The notes beneath the pieces were generated by a model, which was not told the DNA's origin, made no database searches, and saw only the letters and a list, made by a program, of their open reading frames with translations. DNA of 63,969 nt, the filler included, from Guillardia theta CCMP2712 (Eukaryota; Protista; Cryptophyta): NCBI RefSeq assembly GCF_000315625.1. It is 6 parts of 6 records of this genome, joined end to end, with 100 filler letters (N's around TTAATTAATTAA, not from the genome) between each part and the next. Parts side by side here need not be neighbours in the genome. Positions count along the whole stretch, not along the records: positions 32,526 to 46,419 come from NW_005434627.1; 5 more parts are not named here. One strand, given 5' to 3'. The translations under genes and the position numbers were made by a program. How positions within the stretch are numbered: the stretch's first letter is position 1; each line of letters starts with the position of its first letter. Positions 32,526-42,003 of this stretch are shown in pieces.

Positions 32526-34727
32526 GCCCCTCCATCTCCTTCCGCAGCTCTCTCGATGTCGCCTCTCGCCTCCCGCAGCCCCTTCTCCGCCTCCTCCGCC
32601 TCCTCCCGCGCTCGCCCGCCCTCCTTCCTCAGCTCCTCTATCCTTCTCCTGCTCTCCCGAGCTTCTTCCTCCAGCTCCTCTACTCGCCTCTCCAGCTCCC
32701 TGGCCTCCTCCTGCCTCCCTGCCGCCTCCCGCGCCTGCATCGTCATTCCCCCTCCCTATCTCCGCCGCCTCCTGCCCGCCCCGCGTTAGTCCCCAGCCTC
32801 CCAATACCCTGCCCCTCTCTCCCTCCCTCTCCCTCCCGCCCTCCCCCTCTGCCCCTCCCCCTCTCTCCGCCCAAGCCTCCTACCTCCTCCAGCTCGTCCG
32901 CCTGTCGCTTCACCTCCTGCAGCCCCTGCACCACCCGCGCTCGCAGGCTCTCCCTCGCTGCCTCCGCACATCGCAGCTGTCTGCTTCCTCGCTCCATCGC
33001 CTCCTCCGTTGTCGCCGTCGCCCGCCTGACCTCTCCCGCACACCCCGCCAGCTCTCGCCGTAGCTCCTCGACCTGGTCTTCCGCCCTTGCCTGTCCCAAG
33101 CCCTCAGCCACCCTACCTCCTCCTCCTATCCTCCTCCTCCTCCTATCCTCCTGCTTCCGCCCTCTATCCTACCCTCCCGCTGCCCTTCTCTCCCCCTTCC
33201 GTGCCGGCTCCCTTCTCCTCCTCTGCGTCTCTCTTCCCCTCGATCGGCTTACCCGCCTCTCCTCCTGCTCTCTCCTCCGACGCTCAAGCTCCTCCTCCGA
33301 CGCCTCAAGCCTGCATCCCCGACACCGCACTCTCGTCAGCCCTCCCCTCCCCTCCCCTCCCCTCCCCTCCCTCCTTACCTCCTTCCTAGCTGCCTCCCGG
33401 CTTCCTCCGCCTCCTCAAGCCTCCTCCGCAGCCCCGCTGCCTCCCGCTCCCCGTCCTCCCGCTCCCTCCTCCTCCTCTCCTCCGCCGCCTCCGCCGCCCC
33501 CGCAGCGCCTCCCCGTCTCTCCTCAAGCCCTCCACCGCTGATCTCCACCCCCTCGCGTCCTCCTCTATCCCCAGCCTCGTCTCCCCTGCCTCTCTCATCG
33601 CCCTCACGCACTCTGCCCTCATCTCCTCCGCCGCTGCCCGTACCCTCCTCGCCTCCCCCGCCGCCTCCCTCCGCCGCCTCTCTGACCTCTCCGCCTCCTC
33701 CTGCATCCGCATCACCTCCTCCCGTAGCCCCTCTGAGCTTCGCCCGGCCTCCTCCAGAGCTCTTTCAAGCCCCTCCATCTCCTTCCGCAGCTCTCTCGAT
33801 GTCGCCTCTGCCTCCCGCAGCCCCTTCTCCGCCTCCTCCGCCCTTTTCCAAGCTTGCTTGCATTCTTCTTTGCTGCTTTGCAGGTCTTGGCTAGTTTGTT
33901 GGAACAAAGCACTGAGAGTTAAGATGTTGCTTTCGTGCTTGTGGCGGTTGATGATATCAAATTTGATGTTTTTTGTGTGTTCCTCAATCAAACTACTTGT
34001 CAACTCTGCAAGTTCCTGTTGCAAGATAAGTGGAAGGGGAGGAGGGAATCTAGTATACCTTGTTGAACATGCTTGAAATGTTTGAGAGGTCCCGTATGAT
34101 GGCCATGCATTCAGTCCGTTGAGCTTGCTTCTTGTCTGCTGATCTCCTCTCTCCCGCTGCTTTCTCAGATTTTGGGGGTTTGGTGGTCAACCCCTTGACC
34201 AATGTTGTCTCTTCCTTTGCAGGCTCTACCTGGCACGAGACGACCGCAGTCTGTCTGTCCCATCCAGGGCTTGACAATCTAAGGGACCGCAGATAAGAAA
34301 AGTGTCAATCCCCATCAACCAACACCTTTCGTGCTTGTCTGTTCCAGACTTTGATTCCAGGCCCTTGCTCATTGCCCAATCGATCTGTCTGGCTCCCCTG
34401 TTGAAGCACAGTCATTTCTTTCGCGTGCAAGACAAGTGGGAGCACTTGTTCTTCGATCTTCCTGAAGCTTCAGAGTTTAACTTCCGACAAACCAGCGCGT
34501 TCTTGTTCAGTCGATCCAACTTGCTGCAAAGAGACCCCTGCAGCATCACATCAAACAGCCGCATCACCAGCCCTCTCTCTGCCCACCTGCAAGCTCCATC
34601 CTCGGCGCAGCTCAGCGGCAGCTCCATCATCGAGGAGCTCTCTCCACCTGTCGCTTCCTTCCTCCCTTCCCTGCTGTCTTCTCGTTCCCGCCATCGCAAG
34701 TTTGAAAGAAGAGCCCCTCGGTCACCC
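32526..34727 (-). CDS. Long coiled-coil E/R/A-rich protein, multi-exon
   Basis: Heptad-rich ORFs at 33386-34024, 32743-33111 and 32474-32746; ~60-bp internal duplication (32541 vs 33783). Confidence 0.55.
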
Positions 34728-35182: not shown

Positions 35183-35863
35183 TCAGAGCCCGGTTGAATA
35201 CCATCCGACGATGATCCTGAGGACTTCAATGGCGACCATCTCCTGATCGTGCTGCTCCTCGGCAGTGCCCGTGCGGTTCATATTCAGCACCAGGCACAGG
35301 AGCAGAAGCTCCTTCACTTGCCAGGCCCATCCCTTCATGATGTTCTCGTAGTGGATAAACTCCTCTGAGGCGTACACGTAGTCCTGCCCGTCACGGTCGT
35401 CTTGTATGTCGACCACCCCAGCTATCATCGCTAGGATGTCTTCCCCAACCTCGGCTATGAGCTCCTGCTGCCATGGGAAGGTCTTGCCCACCCACCTCTC
35501 CACCTCCGCTCTGATCTTCTCGTCCTCGCTCTCCAGCAGCTTCGCCGCCACCCCCTCGTACTGGTCGAGCACCACAAATCGCTCGAAGTAGCGGCAGACG
35601 TTCACGTGCTGAATCCGGTGGCTGTCCTTGAAGACGCTAAGCCCATAGCAGATGCCCCTTGCCGACAGTTCGCCGTAGGTGAGGAGGAGCTGGACGAGGG
35701 AGGAGAACGTCTGCTCGTAGAGGGCATCGCTGAGGCGGGCGCAGATGGGCTCCAGCAGCACGTGCGTCATCGTCTCAAGGAACAAGTTGATGGGTTGGTG
35801 TTCTACGCCCCGGGTGGCCGTTTCAAAGATAACCGTTGTAACCGCTGATCGAACAGTTGCCAT
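35183..35863 (-). CDS. Intronless hypothetical protein (~226 aa)
   Basis: Uninterrupted ORF with GC3-rich codons and globular composition; no recognised motif. Confidence 0.6.
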   Translation of the reverse strand: MATVRSAVTTVIFETATRGVEHQPINLFLETMTHVLLEPICARLSDALYEQTFSSLVQLLLTYGELSARGICYGLSVFKDSHRIQHVNVCRYFERFVVLDQYEGVAAKLLESEDEKIRAEVERWVGKTFPWQQELIAEVGEDILAMIAGVVDIQDDRDGQDYVYASEEFIHYENIMKGWAWQVKELLLLCLVLNMNRTGTAEEQHDQEMVAIEVLRIIVGWYSTGL

Positions 35864-36519
35864 TCTGATGAAAGAAGTTGATAGTGATTGATTGTTGATT
35901 GAATCCGTTGAATCTGCTTGAAAAGTCAACAAGCTAAAGGAGTTTCATTTTGTTCCCCTCATTGAGTTTGACAAGCTAAAGGAGTTTCAAGTCATCGTGA
36001 AAGCTTCAGGAGTCTAACTGACGGATACTAACACTCTCAGCTAATAACGATAACCCTCTCTTTCTAGGCACTAGGTCTCGATCTGGTGGGGTTATGGAAG
36101 GAATGCATGGGTTCGCCCAGCAGGCTGAGGCATGTGGCTTTCTCTAATACACTAATACATGTGCCTCTAGGAGATGATATACCAGTGCTAGTCGCTAGGT
36201 CCCATACATATAAAGATGAGCCCTGTCCGCCTCAGACAGAAGAAGGTGAAAGATCAGGGGCAGCAGATGCCCCGCGAACTTCCGGTAATACTGAGAAGTG
36301 CTGACTTGTGAAGCTTTCATAGGCAGGAGTATATCGAGCTAGGAAAGAGCTCTTTTCTTGGGGGGGGTGGGGGGTGGGGAAATGGTACTGACAGAAAGGA
36401 AGAGGGTAGGGGGGGTGGACTCCTGGGTGGACCAGGAACTTTGTTGGATCACTTGTAGGTGGGATGCATGGCAAGAACGCAGCAACGGGAAAGGAATGTG
36501 ATGGTAGAGGTAAGAATAG

Positions 36520-37500
36520 ACATGTGTAGGATGAAGAGAAAGATGAAGAGAGATCTCAGATGAGAAGAAAGAATGAAGAAAACTACCAGATGAGAAGAAA
36601 GAATGAAGAAAACTACCAGATGAGAAGAAAGAGGACAGATATCTTGGATTGAAGCAGAGGTGGTTGGATGAGAAGAAACAAGGATAGACCTATCGGATCA
36701 GGAGAAGGAAGAAGACATCTATGAGATAAGTAGACAGATAAAGAAATAAGGAGAAATGTATCATCTCTCACAAGATGAAAGAAAAGGACATCTATGAGAT
36801 ATCTCAAAACAGATATCTTGGATTGAAGGATGACAGAGCTGCATCCATCAGATAAGAAAAAAGAAACAGACACGAGGGAGGTATCTATAAGAATTGACAG
36901 AAGAGATCTATAAAGTGGGAACAAAATTGCAAAGATCTATCAGATAAGAAGAAAGATGAGGTCATGCGAGAAGAAAGGAAGAAGAAATCTTGCAAGGTCT
37001 TTCGGATAAGAAAAACTGTAAATCGATAGAGACTGGGATTTGTGATGAGAGATCGAAAGAGACTGGGATTTATCAGTCAGGAACCAAGACAGAGAAAAGT
37101 GTCAGAAAAGAAGAAAGAAGCCAAGGTCTGTCATGTAAGATGGGAGCAAAGACGGAGGGATCTACACAATAAATACATGCAGTAGATGTGTCAGACCACG
37201 AGAAACGAGAAGAGCTCCATCAGGTGATAGCAAATATGACATGATCATGCGTCAGAAAAGGAGAAAGAGAGAGATATATGCAAGGAATTCAAGAGTTCAG
37301 CAAAGAATCATTTAGGAGAGATGTATAATAGAGCAAGCAACATGATTCAGACGTATGACATGATTGACATGATACACGAAGAAGAGTTGAGAGACGTATG
37401 CCGAAGAAAGTAGGTAGAGAGACGCGTCAGATAGGAAGGATAGAAAGATGGACGTTGGGCCAAGGATCTTGTGAACCCTTTTTCTAGATGATACGAGAAG
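36520..37500. repeat. Purine-rich degenerate repeat tract (AGATGAGAAGAAA units, 31-bp tandem duplication at ~36558-36630)
   Basis: Seen directly. Confidence 0.6.
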
Positions 37501-38125
37501 TATGATAAAGGTCCTATGCTGATATGGCCTTGGCTAAGTCCTTTGTTAGTTTCTTGCTGCCTCAGGGGACAGCTTGCTTTAGCACTGAAGGCTACCTGCG
37601 ATTTCCTTACGTTGTACATCTCCATTAGCCCCAGCTTGTGCTTCTCTTGCTCCCTTTCGTTGGATGATCTCAGTCGTTTATATGCATTACTCCACATGAT
37701 TTCATGATCTGATTCCAATGATACACACAACCATGACAACCCTCGGGAAGCATGTTGCCACATACTTGCACTGCTCCCTCCTACATTCATGATCGCCCCT
37801 TATCATGTTTCCGTCTCCTGACCTCAAGAATTCTACCCTGCAAGTCCCCAGAAGCAGACAGCGGCAGTCAGGCTTCAGGGACAGTCACAGAGGGCATACC
37901 GTCCAGCCTCCTACCAAACATCAAAGTCGTTCATTGGAGGGTGAGTGCCAGCAACTTCACGATCTCCCTCGCTCCAAGTCCTTCTGCTTTGATACCCGTT
38001 GCGATCATGGAGTTAGACTATGTCTTGCCCGTGCTATCACAAGCATACATGTTGTAAGGCATGCAACAACGAGACTGTTGCAATGACAAAGAGGTTGCGT
38101 GATTCTCTCGCAATCGTTCACATAT

Positions 38126-41100
38126 CTAATTTCCCACAACAACTTCAACTTCCTCACAACTCCTCAATCTGTCTTCGCCTTCAAACAGCAGGCACACCAT
38201 GATGTCTCGGTACCCGTCGGGCGCCTCCTCGAGGCTCAGCTTGTTCTTCACCCGGCACACGCGCATGCCGGTCTTGCCTTGCGACGTCAGCCAGCGATAC
38301 ACTTGCGCCATGTGGCTCGGGCGGTTGCAGATGACGCTTGCTCGCACCTGCACGCACTTGAGGGACTGCAATCGAGACCTGTCGTCCTCCTACCGGGTCA
38401 AGAACGCGACGGCTGTAAGGCCAGCCAGCATCCTCCTCCTCCGCCGCCGCGTACTCCATCACCTTCTCAGCCATCCTCGGCTTCTTCTTCACCGCAGCCG
38501 GTACGAACTCGATCGGATGCACTCCGTCATCGAAATGGCAGGCGATCCTGACCCCCTTCGCCCCCTGGCCTGCGGCTCTTCCAGCGGGTCTCTCGACTTC
38601 ACACTCGGCCGCATGCGCCTTGAGGACGTCGACTAGCTTGCTATGGAACGAGTCGTTGAGCAGCACCGCACGGCTGTGGAGTTGCGATATGAAGACATCC
38701 TCTCGTAGCATCAGGCTCCCCGTGCTCAGCCGCCTCCACGTCTCTAGTTTCTTGTGCAGGCTGGACTCCTTCCTGTCTTCCTCCTCCACTCTGATCGCTC
38801 GCACCTGTCATACGGTCATGCCTGTCGGCTACAACCCATCGCCCTGGCAGTACCTGATGGTCATCCTGGTAGAACAAGGCGTCGGCGAAGCCTTGCCCGA
38901 CCTCCTTGAGCTCAGCTCCTCCTGCTTCCTTCATCATGGACTCATATCTTCTGTCGTTGATGCGGGCGAGCTTGTCCATGAGCCGCTGGATGTGCTTCTT
39001 CAAGCGAGGCAGGAGCTGCGGGTTGTCTCGCCAAGCGTTGAGTCGCAGCACACGCCCGGTGAAGTATTCATATGCTCGCTCGAAGTCTCCGCTCAGGTAC
39101 TGGGTGAAAGCTTCATCCTCGTACAAGCTGTGCGTTGTCTCTGCCATCAACACATCTCCAAGGCTCTCTCGAGACTGCAGCATGCGAGCCTTCCACCCCA
39201 CCGACAGCATGTCGCTGCCTTCCTCTTCGCTCCTCGAGCTCGAGGGGCTCAGGATCCGAAGACACACCATGAGGATGAGGCTGTGCAGTCGCTGCATCAT
39301 CTCGGTCATCTCCCCCCCCCCCCTGCTGCGCCTCGAGGTCTAGCGCGTCCGTCTCCGCCTTCATGGACTCCTCGTCTGCTATCATTCCGAACGACCTGCC
39401 CGCAACGACATCTGCTCTGTACTTGACAAAGTCGTAGAAGCGCTCGAAGTCGTTCTTGGCAAAGTCATCGCCCAGCGCAAGCTTGGCCACGGCCTCTACG
39501 CTTCGCTTGTCCATGACGATGACCCTCGACCTCCTGTAGCAGCTGAAGATGGAAGACGACTTCTCGCTCGGCAAGATGTACCCTGCGCTCACGGTGACTC
39601 CCAAGGCTTCTCGGACTCGACTCATCATGTTTGACAAGTCTGTCTCCTCTGCCGTTCTGTTTCTGAGCGACGCCTTGTAAAGCCGGTAGAACGCCGCCGA
39701 GATCGCCAGCAGAAGTACCAGGAAGCCTCCGCTGACTGCCAGCACGATCGTCAGCAGCTTGTCACGACCTTGACCCGACCCGTCACTGGGCGGATTCCAG
39801 CCGCTTCTTCCGCCAGGCCACAGCGGAGTCAGTCCGCTAACGTCGGCGAAGGCCTGGGCGGCCTCCCACGTACCGATGACGACGGACTCTATCACGGACG
39901 CGTTCGCTGAGGACGGCTGGATGTTCTCGATAGTCACGACGATCCCGTTGGGCTCTCGATCTCCCGACGCGTCGAAGGACACCAGTCCCGAGGCCCCGGG
40001 GAACGAGGAGTTTCTGATCGCATGAGCAAGCGCCGCCCCCGTGCCGTTGGTCTTGGCCAGCCCCAGCGCAGTGGCCCACGCGGCATCGTAAGCGAAGGAG
40101 GCATAGTCGGGCAAGGGCATGGAGTACTCCGCGGGCTTCATGCCGATGATGGAGTTGTTCACCTTGGACTGGTCGACCGTCCTGAAAGCGGTCTCAAGGA
40201 GGTCTCGCTTCTTCCCGTACAAAGGAGCGACGCGAATCTGTATCCAGCCCTTGAGAAGCGCCGCCAGCTGCTTGTGCTGCATGGATGCCACCACCGCACT
40301 CGGCACTCCTATCTCCCCCGCCACCCACGCGTGTCCGTCCTGCAAGAGCCCCTCCTTGTTGGAATAGGTCAGCACCAGCTCCAGGTTGGGTACGCCGATG
40401 CCGAGGTAGAGGAAGATCTTGGCGCGGCTCTTCTGCAGGGAGCTCATGGCTGCAGCAATGGACTTGGAGCCTTCTGGCACAAACTTCTGTACTTGAACCA
40501 AGTCGACGCCCTTGGACGAGGCTTGTTCCTGCACATTTGACAGGAAGCCGTTGCCGTAGGTTGTGTCCTCACACAGGACCGCGATCTGCTTCCACTTGAA
40601 CCGGAGGCATACCTCGATGAGCGCCATGGCATTCAGCATGATGAGAGGGTTGGTTCGCGAGAAGAGCGGGTACGTCTGCTTGTCCGAGAGAAGCGTGGAA
40701 GAGGCCCCGAAGCTCGTCACCGGCGTCCCCTGCAGAGCAGACACAAGGCTCACGACCTGCGACCCGTCCGAGGTCATCGGGCCCACTATCGCATCGATGC
40801 TCGACGACTCTCTCCACGCCAAGACTTCCTTGAGCGCCTCTGCTGCGTCGAACTGCGAGTCTTTGAACTTCACGTCGATGCGGAAGCCCTGCCAGCTCAC
40901 GTCACGCCCAGCACCAAGGCCAGCTCGTCGCAGACCTGGGGCAGGCGGTCGACGACGGCTTGGCCGACGATCTGAGGGTCTCGAGTGTTGACGTGATAGA
41001 GCGCGATGAGGCAGGCCATGGAGACCTGCTTGAACGCCAGGAGAGGCACAGACCCGTACGTCTTGACCAGCACCGGCGACAGCACTCCCACTGTGCTGTT

Positions 41101-41175
41101 GAGCGACTGACCAGCGGCCGATGAGGAGGAGAGGATGCAGGCAACGAGGAGGAGGGGTGGGAGCCTGCTGGTCAT
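38126..41175 (-). CDS. Single-pass receptor: signal peptide, Venus-flytrap (ANF receptor/PBP1) domain, TM helix, helical linker, RelA/SpoT-like nucleotidyltransferase domain
   Basis: AIVGPMTS, SFGASSTLLSDKQTYPLFSRT, FKWKQIAVL, YDAAWA, FPGASGLVSFDASGDR; TM LLTIVLAVSGGFLVLLLAISAAF; KKKPRMAEK...DPVRASVIC...RVKNK...GYRDIMV; introns 40935-40889, ~38853-38806 and 38393-38348; frame break at the poly-G tract 39312-39323. Confidence 0.8.
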
Positions 41176-42003
41176 TGCTGGTGGTGCTTCGGTCCTGGCG
41201 GAGCCTGGAGGAGACAAAGGAAGTGATCTTGAAGGTAAGTTGGGATCAATAACAACCTGTGATCAATGCATCATAGCAGTCAGATCCTTTCCTCAACACT
41301 TGAAGAACTCGTTCATGCGCCTTTCCCTCGCTTCTTATCCATTTTCATGAAATCTCTGCAACTCAGCTTGCCTGCCAAGTTTTTCCTTTGTTCGTCTTTT
41401 CTTCTAATCATCAGATGCACTCATACCATGCTTGTTTTGCAACCCCCTCCCTGCTTCCCCCCTCCCCCCTCCCCCGCCCGCTTCCTGATCCCTCCCATCT
41501 TCCCATCCTTCTCTCATTCCTTTCCCCCTCTCCTCTCTCCCTCCTCATCTCTATCTTCCTCTCCCTCCGGCTTGCTTCCTTTGGGGCCTCTCTTGCCTCC
41601 CAGATCTCCCTGCCTCCCATTCTCTTCCTCCCTCCTACTTTTCTCTCTCTCCCTCGAGTCTCAGGACGTGTAGAGATCGTTCTAACTTGCTCCGAAGTGT
41701 CAAACTAAGTTTCGGTCTTCTCTCACTAAGAATACAACTTGTCATGAGGAAGAAGAGGCTGCGGGTGCCATAAGTAATTAGGATGCCGCGTTATTTAACA
41801 AAAGACGCACGAGCCGGTCACAACAGCATGCCCAGCCTGCAGGACTCCCTGCGCCCGGGGGGTCTGCTGGCCTCTCGCAACGTCTACGTCTCCGCCTCCG
41901 GACTCTTCCTCCTCTCCCTCTACGTCGCCGCCCTCCGCCACGTCAACCCCGGCGCCCACACGTAGGCTATAGCAAAGATTCATTCATAAACCCACCAATT
42001 CCC

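Follow-up and report, generated by a model that had tools for sequence, protein, structure and literature searches.

What does the nuclear gene GUITHDRAFT_110643 of the cryptophyte alga Guillardia theta CCMP2712 encode, and is its Venus-flytrap sensor wired to an enzyme of the RelA/SpoT homologue (RSH) type? The gene lies on the minus strand of a 63,969-nucleotide (nt) stretch of DNA from assembly GCF_000315625.1 (the window, to which all positions refer), in the part drawn from scaffold JH993011.1 (NW_005434627.1), 5.6 kb from the end of that scaffold and with window position 32526 corresponding to scaffold position 1. A first-pass annotation of positions 38126–41175, made without database searches, had proposed that one gene here couples a flytrap to a RelA/SpoT-like nucleotidyltransferase. 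We find that the product is a type I membrane protein in which a signal peptide, a GABA-B-like flytrap, one transmembrane helix, a helical region of ~300 amino acids (aa) and an RSH-like domain of ~210 aa follow one another. A flytrap receptor with an RSH-like synthetase output is, in our judgement, the best explanation of the locus as a whole, and we hold it with moderate confidence.

To define the transcript, we aligned contigs from RNA-type runs of two studies (X1 and X4) and from a DNA-like run (X5) (Logan) to positions 35400–41350 (5,951 nt). In X1, one RNA contig of 3152 nt spans 41206–38173 and lacks all three introns, and overlapping contigs are present in X4; the DNA-like run X5 retains all three introns, and a raw RNA-seq run (X12) contributed 2 reads at the depth sampled. 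After correction at a run of G residues, the frame is open and the mRNA product has 996 aa, of which 953 codons lie inside the window and 43 beyond it. The sensor, the transmembrane helix and the RSH-like domain are on one spliced mRNA in one open frame, and the 3152-nt contig together with this frame excludes the alternative that sensor and enzyme are separate genes. The single minus-strand gene starting with an ATG at 41175, as drawn in the first-pass annotation, therefore stands. That annotation had also considered the gene hidden. The longest open reading frame (ORF) of the feature, 39116–40900 (minus strand), is 98% identical to P0001, which is GUITHDRAFT_110643 itself (948 aa), 100% identical to the MMETSP transcript ORF P0003 and 74% identical to a Hanusia phi protein; the gene is thus annotated, as a "hypothetical protein", and what remains true of the claim is that no source annotates the C-terminal domain.

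The extracytoplasmic part agrees with the earlier description in each of its elements. The N-terminus (approximately aa 1–22, 41175–41110, minus strand) looks like a signal peptide when read by eye. The Pfam family ANF_receptor (PF01094) matches above its gathering score, with 129 bits versus a cut-off of 25.4 (E 2.7e-37, and 3.4e-37 in a second scan), and covers positions 22–344 of the 353 in the hidden Markov model, so that the domain is essentially complete; the same family is matched in P0001, P0002, P0007 and P0069. Among solved sequences, GABA-B R1 is nearest (E 2e-16), followed by T1R, CaSR, mGluR and the plant protein GLR3.4. A hydropathy scan gives one transmembrane helix, followed by the basic stretch R-L-Y-K-A-S-L-R-N-R, and by the positive-inside rule the RSH-like domain should face the cytoplasm.

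Fold and putative active site of the C-terminal domain

We generated a template-free AlphaFold model of the isolated domain (P0003 505–714, corresponding to aa 787–996, ~210 aa) from 27 family sequences, with a predicted local distance difference test score (pLDDT) of 87.6 and a predicted template-modeling score (pTM) of 0.83. When this model was compared with the PDB by Foldseek, all of the 50 best matches were RSH synthetases (best E 5e-6), and they include RelP, RelQ, an exported small alarmone synthetase, Rel, RelA, FaRel2, Tas1 and CapRel. VIA-align, which is independent of Foldseek and was run against 48,161 representatives, placed RSH proteins in all of its first 11 chains (Z 12.9–8.2), led by 6ewz_A (Z 12.9 over 162 aa, root-mean-square deviation (rmsd) 4.4), 6fgk_A (Z 12.6) and 5dec_A (Z 12.5). 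A second model comprising the whole cytoplasmic part (515 aa; md8e8bdb8da8e; pLDDT 82.7, pTM 0.81) again retrieved RSH proteins (Z 12.0–11.2, rmsd 3.0–3.8 Å). With both models, the domain groups with RSH synthetases and apart from other Pol-beta-type nucleotidyltransferases. Because the non-RSH entries (MenT, TdT, TENT2, RsfS and CD-NTases) score Z 7.6 or less in VIA-align, well below the RSH range, we rejected an identity as a classical Pol-beta nucleotidyltransferase, a CD-NTase or a MenT protein. The first-pass annotation had named beforehand two results that would speak against it, a missing structural match and separate genes for sensor and nucleotidyltransferase; AlphaFold, Foldseek and VIA-align instead put RSH synthetases on top, and the RNA joins both parts in one gene.

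Consistently, RelA_SpoT is the only named family among the shape matches and language-model neighbours in the ESM Atlas. The best shape match there (TM 0.82) is a eukaryotic cluster whose few labelled members are ciliates, and a 570-aa Pseudomonadota cluster (TM 0.72) and a cluster of TPR-repeat proteins (TM 0.61) were also found; judging from these modelled shapes, relatives of the domain may exist outside cryptophytes. We conclude with high confidence that the C-terminal domain is a divergent RSH-fold homologue, closest to the small alarmone synthetases.

We then asked whether the residues of an RSH active site are in place. A phmmer search with exon 3 against 1.84 billion representatives returned 66 relatives and a profile search 57, and the family consensus reads Q-L-x2-R-A ... 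C-x-F ... K-x3-R-M-x-E-K ... W-P ... I-L-D-P-V-R-A-S-V-V-C ... K-N-K-F ... G-Y-R-D ... I-I-G-E-I-Q-I-H-D ... M-H-K-L-Y-K. The family profile was aligned by hhalign with E. coli RelA 190–400, taken as a single sequence and as a 60-sequence profile. The match is weak (E 1.3e-3 and 3.5e-4, probability 18–37%) and colinear with RelA at the K of R-P-K, the D of D-V-R-A-V-R, G-Y (G-Y-Q-S), E-I-Q (E-I-Q-I-R-T) and H-x2-Y-K (H-W-K-Y-K); D894 of I-L-D-P aligns with the D of D-V-R-A-V-R, and E961 and Q963 with the RelA E-I-Q. At K-x3-R-M-x-E-K, the alignment contains a 4-residue gap and has near-zero confidence.

The cytoplasmic peptides quoted in the first-pass annotation are all present, and its ordered RSH motifs are not chance resemblances because they fall in columns that hardly vary across the more than 100 sequences of the family. 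The D of I-L-D-P is conserved in 120 of 120 sequences, the R of D-P-V-R in 118 of 119, the K-N of K-N-K-F in 107 of 107 and the Y of G-Y in 80 of 83, while the E and Q of E-x-Q are conserved in 81 of 81 and 80 of 81, and the R and K of R-M-x-E-K in 118 of 118 and 120 of 120, respectively; the first K of K-x3-R-M-x-E-K is invariant. The catalytic Asp and the E-x-Q of RSH synthetases are thus both represented, in putative roles, and because the alignment probability is low this assignment rests on sequence and fold together.

This conservation bears on the alternative that the domain is a catalytically dead RSH-fold pseudoenzyme, which would act as a nucleotide-binding or protein-docking module and signal via partners. 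One canonical ATP-site Arg is gone, the second motif is altered and the domain is too divergent for Pfam, all of which would suit a dead enzyme. Set against these changes, 80–120 sequences at only ~35–45% identity keep, with few or no exceptions, the putative metal/catalytic Asp and Glu, the Gln of E-x-Q, the Tyr and three basic residues; such invariance is typical of an active site, and because pseudoenzymes usually lose these residues, we regard this alternative as very unlikely. By analogy with characterised RSH enzymes, the domain is probably an active pyrophosphokinase under receptor control.

The nature of the acceptor is a separate matter. RSH-fold enzymes are also known to produce (pp)pApp or to pyrophosphorylate tRNA (see bioRxiv 10.1101/2021.04.30.441581 and PMC11245113), and (p)ppGpp is therefore only one possible product. 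The same architecture might act on adenine nucleotides to give (pp)pApp, like Tas1 and FaRel, or on the 3′ end of tRNA or another RNA, like CapRel and FaRel2, and the output would then be another messenger or a block of translation. Tas1 (6ox6, Z 9.9) and CapRel (7ztb, Z 9.7) rank high in the fold search, little below the small alarmone synthetases, and FaRel2 matches too. In addition, two of the deviating positions (G-Y-R-D for the canonical G-Y-x-S-x-H, and H-D for R-T) sit at what we take to be the acceptor site of known RSH enzymes. On the other side, RelP and RelQ, which make (p)ppGpp, match best (Z 12.5–12.9), and a translation-blocking toxin would be an unusual receptor output for a gene family expanded in one genome. 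The data do not discriminate between acceptors; we consider it doubtful, though quite possible, that the product is specifically (p)ppGpp, and a different acceptor rather unlikely.

A recurrent cytoplasmic module and a proposed mechanism

The helical region between the membrane and the RSH-like domain is conserved in paralogs (Table 1). It matches no Pfam family and, when searched within the 515-aa cytoplasmic model, gave no convincing separate fold match; on the same grounds, we rejected the idea that it is a degenerate HD hydrolase or another known domain. Together with the juxtamembrane motif, a V-x-A-I-R-V-x-E motif and the RSH-like domain, this region forms a module that recurs behind different ectodomains. 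The module follows a single flytrap in the G. theta paralog P0007 and two tandem flytraps in the Hanusia protein P0069. In the paralog P0032 (GUITHDRAFT_133234, L004:3001-6584), it follows a Cys-rich ectodomain of ~500 aa that is not a flytrap and matches no Pfam family, with only a weak match to Ephrin_rec_like (E 0.009). The module is also found in the Cryptomonas transcript P0093, and the G. theta paralogs make this a gene family expanded in one genome.

In the mechanism that we propose, a small ligand would close the flytrap on the extracytoplasmic side, and closure would rearrange a receptor dimer, as in other flytrap receptors. The transmembrane helix and the helical region would relay this change to the RSH-like domain, which would move the beta-gamma pyrophosphate of ATP to the 3′-OH of a purine nucleotide, and the product, (p)ppGpp or (pp)pApp, would act as a cytoplasmic messenger. 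For catalysis, acceptor, product, dimer-based gating, ligand and the membrane involved, this scheme draws on what is known of such receptors and of RSH enzymes. Signal peptides of cryptophytes target proteins to the endoplasmic reticulum (ER), and the ER also encloses the plastid. Because the signal peptide leads into this compartment, the membrane could be the plasma membrane or the ER/chloroplast-ER.

Several observations weigh against a flytrap receptor with an RSH-like synthetase output. At the sequence level, PF04607 (RelA_SpoT), the comparison suggested in the first-pass annotation, is unmatched in the window ORF pieces, P0001–P0003, 63 homologues and 27 isolated domains, even with E values as high as 10 admitted; because of this result, we file the domain as an RSH-fold homologue and not as a member of the Pfam family. 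The family profile, searched against PDB sequences, finds no RSH and only chance matches to the C-linker of HCN channels (E 0.2–0.3), and the profile–profile probability from hhalign is low, as given above. Within the motifs, the family lacks the leading Arg of R-x-K-x3-S-x3-K, two positions ahead of the first Lys, and the Ser position of this motif holds Arg in K-x3-R-M-x-E-K; D-P-V-R stands for D-x2-G-x-R, and H-D for R-T after E-x-Q. The missing Arg, D-P-V-R and H-D imply that ATP and acceptor binding may differ from those of canonical enzymes. The named family members are limited to cryptophytes (Guillardia, Hanusia and Cryptomonas), the rest being metagenome contigs. This analysis identified neither a cytoplasmic receptor nor a hydrolase that would serve such a nucleotide, and a predicted complex of two copies of the RSH-like domain scored 0.00, which is evidence neither way. 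Finally, the window copy as assembled cannot encode the full RSH-like domain, as it lacks the catalytic E-x-Q strand and the C-terminal helix.

Weighing these points, we keep the receptor with an RSH-like synthetase output as the preferred reading. Its extension to the family is more tentative: cryptophytes may possess a set of ligand-gated receptor alarmone synthases in which an extracellular or lumenal small molecule, bound by a flytrap or another ectodomain, directly switches on the production of (p)ppGpp, (pp)pApp or a new 3′-pyrophosphorylated nucleotide in the cytoplasm, a proposal to which we give real but less than even weight.

Gene structure and the assembled copy

Table 1 Coordinates of the features of GUITHDRAFT_110643 and its 3′ flank in the window
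Feature	Position	Strand	Evidence or remark
Exon 1, aa 1-80	40936..41175	-	start codon 41175-41173; tblastn of P0001; RNA contig to 41206
Venus-flytrap domain ANF_receptor, aa 79-394, spans intron 1	39947..40941	-	Pfam PF01094
Intron 1, 47 nt, GT..AG	40889..40935	-	joint in X1 and X4 RNA contigs, absent from X5
Exon 2, aa 81-758	38854..40888	-	most of flytrap, transmembrane helix, most of helical region; tblastn, RNA
Transmembrane helix, aa 458-480	39689..39757	-	hydropathy scan
Cytoplasmic helical region, aa 481-786, ~300 aa, spans intron 2	38721..39688	-	predicted helices; conserved in paralogs
G11 run, assembly out of frame	39312..39322	-	RNA contigs, P0003 sequence, frame test
Intron 2, 49 nt, GT..AG	38805..38853	-	RNA; same-position intron in paralog P0007
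Exon 3, aa 759-895	38394..38804	-	tblastn, RNA; long N-terminal helix of RSH-like domain
RSH-like domain, window-encoded part, aa 787-953 of 787-996	38173..38720	-	fold searches, hhalign, conservation
K-x3-R-M-x-E-K motif	exon 3, K864 at 38489-38487	-	conservation
I-L-D-P motif	exon 3, D894 at 38399-38397	-	conservation
Intron 3, 46 nt, GT..AG	38348..38393	-	RNA; same-position intron in paralog P0007
Exon 4, aa 896-953 and one base	38173..38347	-	V-R-A-S-V-I-C, K-N-K-L, G-Y-R-D (38215-38204); tblastn, RNA
Start of intron 4	37030..38172	-	holds false stop 38128-38126; homologous to intron of L005
Pyrimidine-rich low-complexity stretch	36300..37029	-	expected place of terminal exons; GC 0.37-0.41

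The RNA contigs define the exons and introns listed in Table 1, and they show that V-L-D-P is brought next to V-R-A-S-V-I-C by splicing. Of the introns removed in the first-pass annotation, three are real; the fourth is not an intron but a 1-nt discrepancy at the G11 run, and RNA rules out splicing there. At this run the mRNA has one base fewer (39315) and a G>A change (39314) and reads Q-Q-G-G-E-E-M-T as in P0003, and the DNA-like X5 contigs end exactly at the run. A bridging intron of the JGI model near 39140–39160 is without RNA support and masks the frameshift; we rejected it. The public model P0001 includes ~35 wrong-frame residues and omits ~55 real ones. The assembled frame, when spliced, halts at codon 672, and the RNA version is open for 953 codons.

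A second difference lies at the 3′ end. Past 38173 the RNA no longer follows the window. The 243 nt that come next encode G-G-L-N-I-I-G-E-V-Q-I-H-D-R-K... to a stop, a total of 43 codons. L005, an ENA metagenome contig of a close relative (~95% nt identity in exons 3–4), has the N-I-I-G-E-V-Q-I-H-D exon ~700 nt after exon 4, and by blastn its intron matches the window at 38024–37941 (89%), at 37593–37168 (84%) and in further short matches down to 37029. Because the L005 exon follows a stretch homologous to window 38024–37029, we interpret the sequence from 38172 downwards as an intron, over which the RNA contigs have no coverage below 38173. The stop at 38126, at which the JGI model and the first-pass annotation both ended the protein, is therefore a read-through into this intron, and the true C-terminus, with E-V-Q-I-H-D, lies in the 43 further codons on the mRNA. 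The intron at 38173 is present in L005 and not in the paralogs P0007 and P0032. The genome after 38173 reads AC, not GT or GC, and L005 is also without an obvious canonical donor there; either the donor is non-canonical or the local sequence differs.

The terminal exons are expected in the pyrimidine-rich stretch, which contains a perfect 30-nt tandem repeat of 2.5 copies at 36557–36632 and for which the DNA-like run X5 has no contig over 36395–36792. The last 43 codons were absent from this window part when it was searched with 4- and 5-mer peptides in six frames and with a 30-mer allowing up to 3 mismatches, and an exact scan of metagenome contigs for the terminal exon gave 0 matches; P0003 itself has no recorded contig. 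Because the assembled copy is frameshifted and lacks its last exons, the intact protein is known from RNA and not from the window DNA.

The RNA contigs (X1 and X4) also differ from the window by substitution, and X5 agrees with the window, at 38451, 38454, 38499, 38885, 38947, 39491, 39535 and, in the G-run, 39314; at 39377, 40604 and 40614, RNA and X5 both differ from the window. In the part covered by P0003, seven of eight substitutions are synonymous and only that at 38885 alters the protein (A748V). These differences suggest that another allele or copy exists or that the reference is a mosaic.

They also raise the possibility that the window copy is a non-functional allele or duplicate, with a frameshift in the G-run and its terminal exons lost, and that the mRNA stems from a different allele or from a copy missing from the assembly; alternatively, both defects arose by misassembly at a scaffold end. 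A defective copy would account for the eight sites at which X5 sides with the window, for the X5 support of the window sequence across 38173, for the early stop of the assembled frame and for the lack of a terminal exon anywhere before the scaffold end, and a predominance of synonymous substitutions is what would be expected of two copies that were functional until recently. An assembly error is favored by the facts that X5, whose contigs are interrupted at the G-run and within the low-complexity stretch, may be the source data of the genome assembly, that homopolymers and repeats are classic assembly trouble, and that the relative's contig L005 has the exon ~700 nt downstream, past a homologous intron. 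We consider a non-functional window copy a substantial possibility, somewhat short of an even chance.

In the surroundings of the gene, the minus-strand ORF 35183–35932 (249 aa; JGI model 226 aa) belongs to a different gene, which lies downstream and has the same orientation, with RNA contigs over 35400–35800 and without a Pfam family. At the scaffold end, positions 32526–33525 have a GC content of 0.70 and a GC skew of about -0.6, and minus-strand ORFs there (e.g. 33386–34024) are Glu/Arg-rich and coiled-coil-like, with only sub-threshold matches to Pfam coiled-coil families. On the opposite strand of JH993011.1, ~9 kb upstream of the gene and outside the window part (L001:1-979), lies another called gene with a 996-aa product that matches ANF_receptor and Peripla_BP_6; given this second ANF_receptor gene, flytrap receptor genes may be clustered.

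Comparison with known systems

The closest structural relatives are the small alarmone synthetases RelP/SAS2 and RelQ/SAS1 (6ewz, 6ex0, 6fgk, 5dec, 5ded) and the synthetase domain of the long RSH proteins Rel, RelA and SpoT, with which the G. theta domain shares fold and order of secondary structure (Z 12–13 over 150–165 residues) as well as a colinear Lys-rich helix, the Asp before the central strand, G-Y, E-x-Q and H-x2-Y-K. Its identity to them is 14–18%, and it differs from them in having no PF04607 match and no R of R-x-K. These enzymes are soluble or ribosome-bound; the G. theta domain is eukaryotic, comes from a nuclear gene with spliceosomal introns and is part of a membrane receptor. 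It does not have the makeup of a long RSH: HD, TGS and ACT gave no Pfam match, alignments with the N-terminal part of Rel have an rmsd of 17–20 Å, and the protein ends ~30 aa past the synthetase-like core, where long RSH proteins have TGS/ACT-type domains.

Tas1 (6ox6), CapRel (7ztb) and FaRel2 (8pu4) share the RSH fold and use non-canonical acceptors; besides the scores given above for the first two, the FaRel/ATfaRel2 complex 8pu1 reaches Z 5.8. Unlike the G. theta receptor, they are bacterial toxins or defence proteins under the control of an antitoxin, an immunity partner or a phage protein rather than of an extracellular sensor.

Among eukaryotic proteins, the plant and algal plastid RSH enzymes (RSH1-4/CRSH) and the divergent eukaryotic small alarmone synthetases (divRel[S]) are, like the G. 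theta protein, nuclear-encoded members of the RSH superfamily; the plastid enzymes are Pfam-recognised and plastid-targeted, whereas the G. theta protein has a signal peptide, a flytrap and a transmembrane helix, and its RSH-like part is predicted to be cytoplasmic. The premise that eukaryotic RSH enzymes are plastid proteins, which the first-pass annotation stated for characterised enzymes, holds for these, since passages in PMC6881373 and PMC10107265 place the plant and algal enzymes in plastids. It is too broad for the superfamily, because Atkinson et al. 2011 noted that fungi, Dictyostelium and diatoms have small alarmone synthetases that are divergent and unassigned, without mentioning a transmembrane or cryptophyte RSH form (PMC3153485). 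Metazoan genomes have the hydrolase MESH1 and no recognisable synthetase homologue (PMC9166373). The N-terminal RelA_SpoT effector domains of fungal NLR proteins are likewise an RSH-type receptor output in a eukaryote (bioRxiv 10.1101/2022.03.16.484565); by description, they are set apart from the G. theta protein in that the NLRs are intracellular and the domain is Pfam-recognised.

The literature searched yielded no account of an RSH-type output on a flytrap receptor or any other membrane receptor, nor of cryptophyte RSH-like receptors, and a single-pass flytrap receptor with an RSH-like output is a receptor design not previously described there. To our knowledge, the eukaryotic (p)ppGpp synthetases recognised so far work inside plastids. 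An active domain would place alarmone-type nucleotides, as second messengers of a eukaryotic cell, under the control of a receptor. No eukaryote is known to have such a pathway, and it would derive from an RSH lineage missed by standard domain models. That structure prediction can recover an RSH fold to which Pfam is blind in ~60 relatives, with E values as high as 10 allowed, bears on whether other eukaryotes hide such synthetases.

The design most similar in layout is that of the receptor guanylyl cyclases of the natriuretic peptide receptor type. As in these receptors, an ANF_receptor ectodomain is followed by a single transmembrane helix, an intracellular regulatory region and, at the C-terminus, the position of a nucleotide-messenger synthase. 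Unlike in these receptors, the flytrap is nearest to GABA-B R1 and class C G-protein-coupled receptors, and the output has an RSH-like pyrophosphokinase fold, with no Guanylate_cyc or kinase-like Pfam match in P0001, P0003, P0007, P0032 or P0069. The RSH-type domain thus occupies the position that the cyclase holds in receptor guanylyl cyclases and, if the proposed reading is correct, would represent a new output class for Venus-flytrap receptors.

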